From the NCBI GenBank assembly GCA_002269645.1, contig NIVC01000221.1, positions 620,001 through 684,000 of the forward strand: a stretch of DNA of 64,000 nt, in the 5' to 3' direction. The notes below the pieces were generated by a model, which saw only the letters and a list, made by a program, of their open reading frames with translations, made no database searches and was not told the DNA's origin. Each line of letters begins with the position of its first letter. Positions within the stretch are counted from its first letter, which is position 1. Source of the DNA: Macrostomum lignano. Lineage: Eukaryota. Below, piece after piece: positions 21,401-23,475 of the stretch. Both the position numbers and the translations under genes were made by a program.

Positions 21401-23475
21401 CTACCGTGTCTTCAAGTCGGACAAGAAATGATGGAAATCGCCTGCAGATATGTTGCCATGGAGATGCTAGAATTGGCGAAGAAAGAACTAGCTTTAGCTG
21501 AAAATAAATTGACTCCAAGCGATCAAGATTATGAAATCAAGCGATTAGCTTTCGAGTTTGTCAAGGAGTTTGTCATGAAGAAACTCGCAAACCATACGGC
21601 AAAGACCGACACTGCCTACGGCTATGCAAATGCTGACTCCCTACATGATGAACTATTCGAAAATTTGAGTAAATCTGGCAACTCTAAAAGTCAATTGATG
21701 TCCGAATGCCTGCTTGAAATGCACTTCAACTTGCGCTATTCGCCTCAACTTGCTGCTGATAGTTCGTGCAGTCCCGTGTGGCTGTTTGCCAGACCTCAGC
21801 ATCCGGGTCACATTATAGTACAGTATCTTTGTGACAAGATCGGCAGCTATGAGGAGGCCTGTCACAAGGATGCCATGTGCTGGCCGGGTCAGCTGGTTGT
21901 CTGTGACACTCGCGACTACAAAGTCCTGACAATCAGTAAAACATTCGATGCAGGCGTCCTCTACCTGCTTGACGACGGCTTGCACTGCATTACCTACCGG
22001 CTGAAGGTGTTCAACATTGAAACTGGCGAGTTGGTTCGGGATCTCGACCCGACGAACAGCGTCATCCTCATGGACATGCTGGTCACGCCCGACAGGCGTC
22101 TAGTGATTGGCAAGAAGTACGAGCCGGCCAGACAGGTGCACATATACAACAATCCGCTGGATGATGACCAGTCCATGGAACAGGAAGAGTTCCACGATCC
22201 GCCTCGAGTAGTTCAGGTTTGAGATTAGCTTGCTGAGCCTGGATTTCATCAAAAATTACTGGGAAGTTGATAGCAGTTATTGTGACGTCATTGAGTCCTC
22301 GACTTTTTTGCTATTGTAAATCGCATGGCTCAAAGGTTTAACCGTTGGGAAGAACAAGTCTTGTAAATTGTTGCGAACTCAATTTTAGTACGTAGGGCTC
22401 CCGGTTTGGCACCACTTCGAGTTCAGAGGTTTTTCTGGGTGTATCAGCAAAATCCGCGCAAGTACAACAAGTTGAGAAGTGGCCCTGAGAAATCAATTTT
22501 TGAGACAGCAAGCTGAAACTTTCTGCCGCTAAGAGTAAGAAACAATGGCTCACTAAGTCACTCAAAAAATGGCCTCAGCTTCGATCAGCTTCCTAAATTG
22601 AGACCAAAATCTTCTACAAGCCTTCTAAACAGATCCCCGAGGCAACCTTCCCAGCACTTCGGCTATTTTAGCCCGTCGATCAGTATCAATGTTGTGTGCG
22701 TGCTTGTTGACCTCAAACCTTGTTTGCTCATCAGTCATTCCTGAATGAATTGGACAGAAATTTATAGGAACAGTAGATAGTACTGCAGTTAAATGCAGGC
22801 ACCAGCTGGAAAGCCTAACCCCGACACAAAAAATACAATTAGATGTACGGGTAAAGTAGCTTGCAAGCCACGAAACCAAAATTTCCTTGGCGTCCAAGAC
22901 CAAGCTGCTTGCCTTTTACGATGTCATTCTAAGCGTTTAAGATGCCGTCCTTTGCGTTTGGGAGATCATTTTTGTCGTTTAAAGTAACACCAAAGTAATA
23001 AATAAAAAAACATTTTTTTTCGATTCAGGCCTACAGGGTGGCTGATGGCTCCATAGCTTTTGACTACATCTTCGAGGACGAGCCGTTTCTCATGCTTGCT
23101 CCATCAAACGATCGCCTCGTGATTGTGCTGGAGAATCACCCGGTGCAGTTGTACGAAATCCTATCGGCCGTTGACGCAGATACGGCCCCAAAGTTTGACT
23201 CGATGGATAACTCGAGCAATTATTGTTCCGTTTCCACCTATCTAGAGGTTCCTTACCTTCAGCATATCCGTGAGTATGCCGAAATTTAATTTGGAATATA
23301 TTCACCCTCGACTACTTATTTTCAGCCATTGCACCCACCCCCAACCAATGTTTGTCGCAACCACACAGGTGCTCTTCTTGGCCAAGGACTTGCTAGAGTC
23401 GCCGATGCCCGACCGTCTGATCCGATAGAGTTCTTGGCTCGCTGGCTGCTTGAAGCATCGCGACGCTCTGAGTGA
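15460..23475 (+). CDS. NWD1/NWD2-like NACHT and WD-repeat protein with C-terminal Dpy-30 (DYDC-like) motif; 8 exons, 2035 aa
   Basis: Exons 15460-15604, 15686-15774, 15861-15977, 16052-17130, 17450-18287, 18725-22216, 23029-23269, 23369-23475. All introns are GT-AG and phase-consistent (6108 nt). Motifs: N-terminal [19 protein letters not shown]...FQLVDMRWG (DUF4062-type), Walker A GCSGCGKT, Walker [40 protein letters not shown], and C-terminal [32 protein letters not shown]. Confidence 0.88.
18340..18545 (+). mobile_element. tRNA-derived SINE in intron 5 of the NACHT-WD gene
   Basis: B box gggttcgaatcc (18382-18393) followed by core ttgagcaaggcacttagctctgcattgcttcagtacaaacagctgtacaaaatgggtac. 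Confidence 0.75.

Follow-up and report, generated by a model that had tools for sequence, protein, structure and literature searches.

Receptors of the STAND/NLR type are usually described as consisting of three parts, namely an effector, an NTPase and a repeat sensor. The closest described relatives of the protein reported here are NWD1 and NWD2, in which a DUF4062/TeTIR domain, a NACHT domain, an NWD1-type winged helix, a helical arm and a beta-propeller region follow each other in the same order. TEP1 shares the TeTIR-NACHT-WD40 logic, has TROVE/vWA domains in addition and is a proven NADase, and APAF-1 serves as the model of autoinhibition by a propeller. The DUF4062/TeTIR domain has a TIR-like NADase fold, active in TEP1, and two preprints describe an APAF-1-like architecture, i.e. 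a propeller-gated NACHT oligomeriser (10.64898/2026.05.01.722283, 10.64898/2026.09.21.753143). The NWD-type architectures are described in both without a Dpy-30-like tail, and neither TEP1 nor APAF-1 carries one. The present analysis concerns a gene of Macrostomum lignano found in a stretch of 64,000 nucleotides (hereafter the window; assembly GCA_002269645.1, contig NIVC01000221.1, positions 620,001 to 684,000 of the forward strand). At positions 15460-23475 of the window an NWD-type STAND NTPase and a C-terminal Dpy-30 motif are encoded together in one gene.

Dpy-30 domains are found in DPY30, DYDC1, DYDC2, RSP2, NME5 and AK7, all of which act as small adaptors or kinases in COMPASS and the ciliary radial spokes. 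In the DPY30-ASH2L and the radial-spoke RSP3 complexes the groove of a Dpy-30 dimer receives an amphipathic helix. The RIIa domain of the protein kinase A (PKA) subunits RI and RII belongs to the same fold superfamily, and the logic proposed for it, a dimer groove holding an amphipathic scaffold helix (AKAP), is the one proposed here. The RIIa domain is N-terminal in PKA whereas the module of the window protein is C-terminal. The last 35-40 amino acids (aa) of the window protein match the Dpy-30 domains of the proteins named above, although in the present case it forms the tail of a STAND NTPase of 2035 aa.

The complete order of domains is DUF4062/TeTIR, NACHT, NWD1-type winged helix, arm, a region of degenerate blades, a linker and a Dpy-30 (RIIa-like) two-helix module. 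Compared with NWD2, the propeller region is too diverged for the Pfam WD40 models and is split by a long insert, and the Dpy-30 tail is an addition. Taken as a whole, the evidence is best explained by an eight-exon M. lignano gene, either BOX15_Mlig013297g3 or a near-identical copy of it, encoding an NWD-type STAND NTPase whose Dpy-30 tail would pair or tether the receptor, and we consider this explanation likely.

In the literature searched, no description was found of STAND/NLR receptors that carry a dimerisation/docking module of the PKA-RII/DPY30 type as a fourth part at the C-terminus. No paper was found linking 'Dpy-30' and 'NACHT', the combination of DPY30, NWD1 and STAND brought up nothing relevant, and the locus name Mlig013297 gave no match. 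With such a module the receptor would be constitutively paired, or anchored at a subcellular site, already before its activation. The initial annotation of the window had called the architecture possibly undescribed. This stands with regard to the literature, but the proteins are already in databases as unnamed 'hypothetical' or 'NACHT domain-containing' entries with automatic Pfam matches. The architecture is not common there either, as it was found only in flatworms.

The gene model and its Dpy-30 tail

The exons were assembled by reading the junctions, starting from the open reading frames (ORFs) in the window. ORF 18695-22222 (1175 codons) terminates with PPRVVQV followed by a stop codon, and upstream of it lie ORFs 16058-17134, with the P-loop, and 17508-18341, with the NWD1-type winged helix. 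In the resulting eight-exon model (Table 1) all the junctions are GT-AG and in frame, and 6108 nucleotides (nt) are translated into 2035 aa, the only stop being the one at the end. The initial annotation had proposed that the 1175-codon ORF does not end the gene, which would continue through splices from 22216 to 23029 and from 23269 to 23369. Both were found in frame exactly as described, and the models based on transcripts continue beyond 22222. Identical exon breaks occur in the GenBank 'hypothetical protein BOX15_Mlig013297g3' of M. lignano (P0002). This protein also has 2035 aa, is 99% identical to the model over 100% of the query and is encoded by eight exons with breaks at the same residues.

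P0002 is located on contig NIVC01003854.1 (L001). Window positions 14667-24452 show 97.5% nucleotide identity to L001 5198-14962, with exons about 99.4% and introns about 98.5% identical; the window holds a duplicate and not the NIVC01003854.1 copy itself. The genome of M. lignano DV1 is known to be duplicated on a large scale, and the finding fits this. Moreover the C-terminus of the window protein recurs unchanged in a separately listed model, UniProt A0A1I8G4P0 (P0003). The annotation of the NIVC contigs combined RNA sequencing (StringTie, TACO) with de novo transcripts mapped to the genome, TBONE contributing the evidence from poly(A) and trans-splicing and TransDecoder the ORFs (PMC5730564). 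As this annotation derives from transcripts, the junctions are transcript-backed, though in a near-identical duplicate.

When the 115 aa encoded by exons 7 and 8 were scanned, the Dpy-30 family (PF05186) was matched with E=2.8e-10 and 40.2 bits (gathering cutoff, 22) over profile positions 9-41 of 42. This match is far beyond chance. The same 115 aa matched RIIa weakly (PF02197, E=0.016), below the cutoff of that family. With phmmer against the PDB sequences the top matches were Dpy-30-domain proteins only, namely DYDC2 (8j07, 8wzb), DPY30 (4riq, 4rt4, 3g36), DYDC1, RSP2, NME5 and AK7, and a weak match to PKA RI-alpha (2ezw) was also obtained. The assignment of the C-terminus to the Dpy-30 motif in the initial annotation is therefore confirmed.

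The last 250 aa were modelled with AlphaFold2 (AF2) from a 10-sequence alignment (mean predicted local distance difference test, pLDDT, 65.7). Helices are predicted at model residues 210-229 and 234-248 with pLDDT 79-92, forming a helix-turn-helix with an RP.DPIEFLA core. The blades reach pLDDT 73-87, and the disordered linker ahead of the Dpy-30 helices, about 40 aa in length, has a pLDDT below 50 at residues 183-209. In addition R-P-x-D-P is invariant in 10/10 of the flatworm sequences aligned.

The commonest form of the Dpy-30 motif is a stand-alone one, most of the profile-search matches being 60-200 aa long. It might accordingly be supposed that the NWD-like gene stops at the TGA at 22220-22222 and that 23029-23475 is a small DYDC/DPY30-like gene (starting, for example, from an ATG at 23203), the fused models being read-through or polycistronic artefacts. 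The donor CAG/GTTTGA is indeed not a strong consensus and the stop codon lies 4 nt inside intron 6. Moreover transcription units of M. lignano are often multi-gene and split by trans-splicing (PMC5730564), which makes chimeric models possible.

However, the 5' half of exon 7 is conserved at the protein level (AY..DG….Y.FE.EP) ahead of any ATG, in all the paralogues and in the parasite orthologues, and the methionine at 23203 is not conserved. The AF2 model has a beta-strand, VVQAYR, that bridges the junction of exons 6 and 7 (pLDDT of the block, 87), the last blade being formed from both exons, and a separate small gene is less likely for this reason. Both terminal introns are found at the same residue and in the same phase in a paralogue whose C-terminal region is only about 24% identical (paralogue D, P0010, locus L002), where the junctions read RGLQ/VYVISDG (phase 0) and YLDML-K/PALASS (phase 1). 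Four neodermatan species, whose annotations were deposited separately, have the same long protein ending in the motif, and the TBONE boundary pipeline made no cut at 22222. Finally, the motif is here the tail of a 2035-aa protein and not a stand-alone protein of about 60-200 aa. The existence of two genes is already largely refuted and we judge it highly improbable.

N-terminal domains and propeller-like region

The first half of the single-gene product can be recognized by Pfam. P0002 scores above the cutoffs for DUF4062 (PF13271, 35.2 bits against 24.7), NACHT (PF05729, 41 bits against 26.7) and HTH_NWD1 (PF25469, 42.5 bits against 27), as well as 38.1 bits for Dpy-30, and the window ORF itself matches PF25469 with E=5e-12. 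Residues 38-126 match the crystal chain of the TEP1 TeTIR domain (11gz_A) with E=6.6e-11. Because this alignment ends at residue 126, no confident counterpart of the catalytic glutamate of TEP1, E1008, could be placed on the window protein. An RWG loop and an SSTF motif are present in the N-terminal domain, and its catalytic glutamate is probably the E of SVTHLEF.

The Walker A (GCSGCGKTS) and Walker B motifs of the NACHT domain are intact. The N-terminal 45% of the protein aligns to NWD2 of molluscs, insects and other animals with 33-38% identity and E-values down to 4e-192, and the helical arm (about 180 aa) is homologous to the arm of NWD2 with an hhalign probability of 99.3%.

The initial annotation had described a NACHT-WD40 protein. 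The NACHT part of this description is correct (PF05729), and the WD40 part is only partly so. No WD40-type Pfam family was matched at E<=0.1 in the 1175-aa ORF or in any paralogue. The remaining 1100 aa or so gave an hhalign probability of 33% against the WD40 alignment of NWD2, which alone speaks neither for nor against homology. Genuine multi-WD40 proteins match three short segments of the family profile in 9-10 stretches each (E 2e-9 to 7e-8), positions 9-70 and 339-381 of the profile among them. In Foldseek the last blades matched the propellers of DCAF1, WDR5 and WDR61 with E about 1e-5, probability 1.00 and a TM score of 0.41. A low-confidence model of the full region gives a rough secondary-structure outline that is first beta-rich, then acidic/disordered and helical, and then beta-rich again. 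We read this divergent region of about 1000 aa as relic, degenerate WD40 propeller blades interrupted by a large acidic/helical insert.

Distribution in flatworms and possible roles of the tail

In M. lignano at least six divergent groups of paralogues end in a Dpy-30 motif above the cutoff. They are the window type (P0002, P0003), group B (P0005), group C (P0007), group D (P0009, P0010), group E (P0122, with P0267 and P0268 in full length) and a NACHT-less 'mini' protein (P0001). The latter, encoded at L001 1521-3813 on the minus strand, has 415 aa, in which part of DUF4062, the last blades of the propeller and Dpy-30 are combined. The motif is above the cutoff in P0005, P0007, P0010, P0001 and P0122, scoring 27.8-44.8 bits in the five groups other than the window type, and is kept in groups whose C-terminal regions are no more than 24-49% identical.

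A profile built from the C-terminal 1100 aa or so was run exhaustively with HMMER against 1.84 billion representatives. It returned 18 matches at E<=1e-10, and all those which could be named are from flatworms. Orthologues were found in Calicophoron daubneyi (2006 aa), Schistosoma spindale (2235 aa), Fasciolopsis buski (2234 aa) and Cichlidogyrus casuarinus (a 619-aa fragment), and further matches in Schistocephalus solidus and Protopolystoma xenopodis. The tails of the Calicophoron, S. spindale, Fasciolopsis and Cichlidogyrus proteins follow the pattern YLE..GL…L..A..V..KRP.DPI..LA..L. A hidden Markov model of the flatworm-tail motif had no match in about 110 non-flatworm NWD1/NWD2 homologues. 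Word-index searches with the last 478 aa or with a 10-sequence C-terminal profile led only to P0001 and evidently missed the full-length relatives.

In a neighbour-joining tree of the N-terminal 900 aa or so (100 bootstraps) the Dpy-30-bearing proteins form a monophyletic flatworm clade, supported in 100/100. P0022, the canonical, WD40-bearing NWD2-like protein of M. lignano, groups outside this clade with the NWD2 of other phyla, and the tree does not place the window protein as an orthologue of NWD2 or NWD1 of other animals. The fusion is old and marks out a clade that is specific to flatworms and descends from NWD2-like proteins, with orthologues in trematodes and a monogenean. The branch adjoining the flatworm clade in the same tree is P0117 of the annelid Paralvinella palmiformis, an NWD-like protein of 1956 aa with no Pfam WD40 match and no Dpy-30-like tail.

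The conservation of the tail also bears on the possibility that the window gene makes no use of the motif today, which would then be a relic in decay or a resemblance due to chance. The parasite tails, scanned alone, match Dpy-30 only, and with 15-25 bits they are mostly below the cutoff of 22, so that automated annotation misses the common architecture. Some isoform models in the databases (P0004, P0006, P0008), which come from paralogous or duplicate loci, lack the motif in frame. In P0004 (compared with P0005) and in P0006 the last exon falls out of frame where the penultimate exon is skipped or other splice sites are used, and not through intron retention; these isoforms could be annotation noise. 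Over the whole coding sequence the window and its duplicate differ by 24 nonsynonymous and 13 synonymous codon changes, which might be taken as little constraint, although these are too few to decide or to judge selection on the last exons. Against this stand the E-value obtained in the window, the persistence of above-cutoff motifs across such divergent groups, core residues that are invariant from Macrostomum to Schistosoma, and a confidently predicted helix pair. A motif without function is thus very unlikely. P0006 is, in addition, a chimera, whose beginning lies in the upstream retrotransposon (window about 4400-6460), on its antisense strand, and in the repeats at 8329-10446.

If the tail is functional, its role can be approached by analogy. 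As in APAF-1 and TEP1, the propeller region would sense a signal, NACHT oligomerisation would then be released and the TIR-like effector domains would be brought together. The C-terminal module may homodimerise, in analogy to DPY30, DYDC and PKA-RII, and possibly heterodimerise between paralogues, and the groove of the dimer would bind an amphipathic helix. The receptor would in this way be pre-paired, or tethered by the flexible linker to a scaffold, which may be AKAP-like, axonemal or other; a paralogue or the mini protein P0001 could also be the partner.

A splicing switch might act on the same module, as suggested in the initial annotation, where it was noted that retention of the 99-nt last intron truncates the motif. 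Reading through this intron does lead to a premature end of the protein (ORF 23038-23289). The one hint of such a switch comes from the database isoforms P0004 and P0006, in which the motif is lost by other means than retention of an intron. The most far-reaching proposal would be that the Dpy-30 tail represents a new regulatory principle for this NLR-like family of animals, as a scaffold tether and/or through pairing with paralogues or a mini decoy (P0001), turned on and off by the splicing of the last two exons. We put this forward only tentatively and think it rather unlikely.

The helix pair of a real fusion could also act within the molecule, as a latch on a helix of the insert or the arm that keeps the receptor off, or as a structural cap. 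The flexible linker permits the tail to fold back and the insert has, in the low-confidence model, long predicted helices of amphipathic appearance. Moreover autoinhibition through C-terminal parts is common among STAND proteins, and APAF-1 is discussed in these terms in the two preprints cited above. No internal partner helix was identified, however, and P0001 retains the motif although it has no NACHT domain, for which reason an intermolecular role fits better. To our knowledge the structurally characterised Dpy-30/RIIa domains are all obligate dimers, and this also weighs against a latch. An intramolecular role is therefore improbable, if less so than the absence of any function.

For the gene model and the pairing or tethering role that we favour, several observations are unfavourable besides the low parasite scores, the isoforms without the motif and the multi-gene transcription units already mentioned. 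The RNA support is second-hand, coming through the annotation of a duplicate that is 97.5% identical. The AF2 model of the C-terminal half (1110 aa, from a 5-sequence alignment) has a mean pLDDT of 35.7 and is unusable as a fold. Furthermore the NADase activity of human NWD1 and NWD2 is absent or very weak in vitro (10.64898/2026.05.01.722283, 10.64898/2026.09.21.753143).

The TIR-like NADase fold of the N-terminal domain makes the place and the restraint of such proteins a live question. RNA interference is routine in M. lignano, in which the clade is expanded. Since transgenesis is established in this species as well (PMC5730564), the proteins are experimentally accessible.

Features and neighbourhood of the gene

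Table 1. Coordinates of the gene and of other features in the window (slashes mark exon/intron borders)
Feature	Position	Strand	Description
Exon 1	15460..15604	+	Start codon and first strand of DUF4062/TeTIR; donor TCTCTG/gttagc; same exon in P0002 at L001 6001-6145
Exon 2	15686..15774	+	DUF4062/TeTIR, continuation
Exon 3	15861..15977	+	DUF4062/TeTIR including RWG loop
Exon 4	16052..17130	+	Remainder of N-terminal domain (SVTHLEF 16340-16360) and NACHT Walker A (16847-16873)
Exon 5	17450..18287	+	NACHT Walker B (17451-17486) and NWD1-like winged helix (17835-18161)
Exon 6	18725..22216	+	1164 codons; NWD-type helical arm (18812-19360), blades, insert; donor CAG/GTTTGA
Exon 6 blades	e.g. 19259-19339, 20303-20389	+	Degenerate, WD40-like; conserved last blades from 21881 on
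Intron 6	22217..23028	+	812 nt, phase 0; contains TGA 22220-22222; acceptor ttcgattcag/GCCTAC
Exon 7	23029..23269	+	Last propeller blade, disordered linker, start of Dpy-30 helix 1 (YLQHI-R); donor ATATCC/GTGAGT
Intron 7	23270..23368	+	99 nt, phase 1; interrupts the Dpy-30 motif; acceptor cacacag/GTGCTC
Exon 8	23369..23475	+	Remaining Dpy-30 motif (PF05186) and stop codon
Paralogue remnant	13014..13278	-	Head-to-head paralogue, exons 1-2 only; L001 counterpart is P0001
Retroelement-like ORF	4473-6437	-	654 aa; RVT_1, E=1.5e-28; non-LTR retroelement-like; GC-rich block (0.60)
Tandem repeats	8320-10450	both	Long repeats (THRV… units among them), open in several frames
WSC-domain ORF	27356-27787	-	E=2.1e-14
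563-aa ORF	28720-30411	+	No Pfam match; transposon-derived look
GIY-YIG ORFs	37073-38489	-	Adjacent ORFs; GIY-YIG endonuclease domain (E=2.5e-5), reverse transcriptase-like part upstream
DENN-domain gene	40121-~56500	+	uDENN/DENN 40121-40864, DENN end 44507-44941, dDENN 47086-47775

The mini protein P0001 is represented in the window by the head-to-head remnant only, and the homology to L001 breaks off at window position 12915. A derivation of the Dpy-30 motif from this minus-strand neighbour or from a transposon was considered and rejected, as the remnant lies apart from the motif and the repeats and the ORFs with reverse transcriptase are elsewhere.

The layout of the GIY-YIG ORFs, with the reverse transcriptase-like part upstream, is that of a Penelope-like retroelement. 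The introns of the DENN-domain gene contain large, strongly strand-skewed tandem repeats at 41.6-42.9, 44.9-45.5, 47.7-49.3 and 53.5-54.3 kb.

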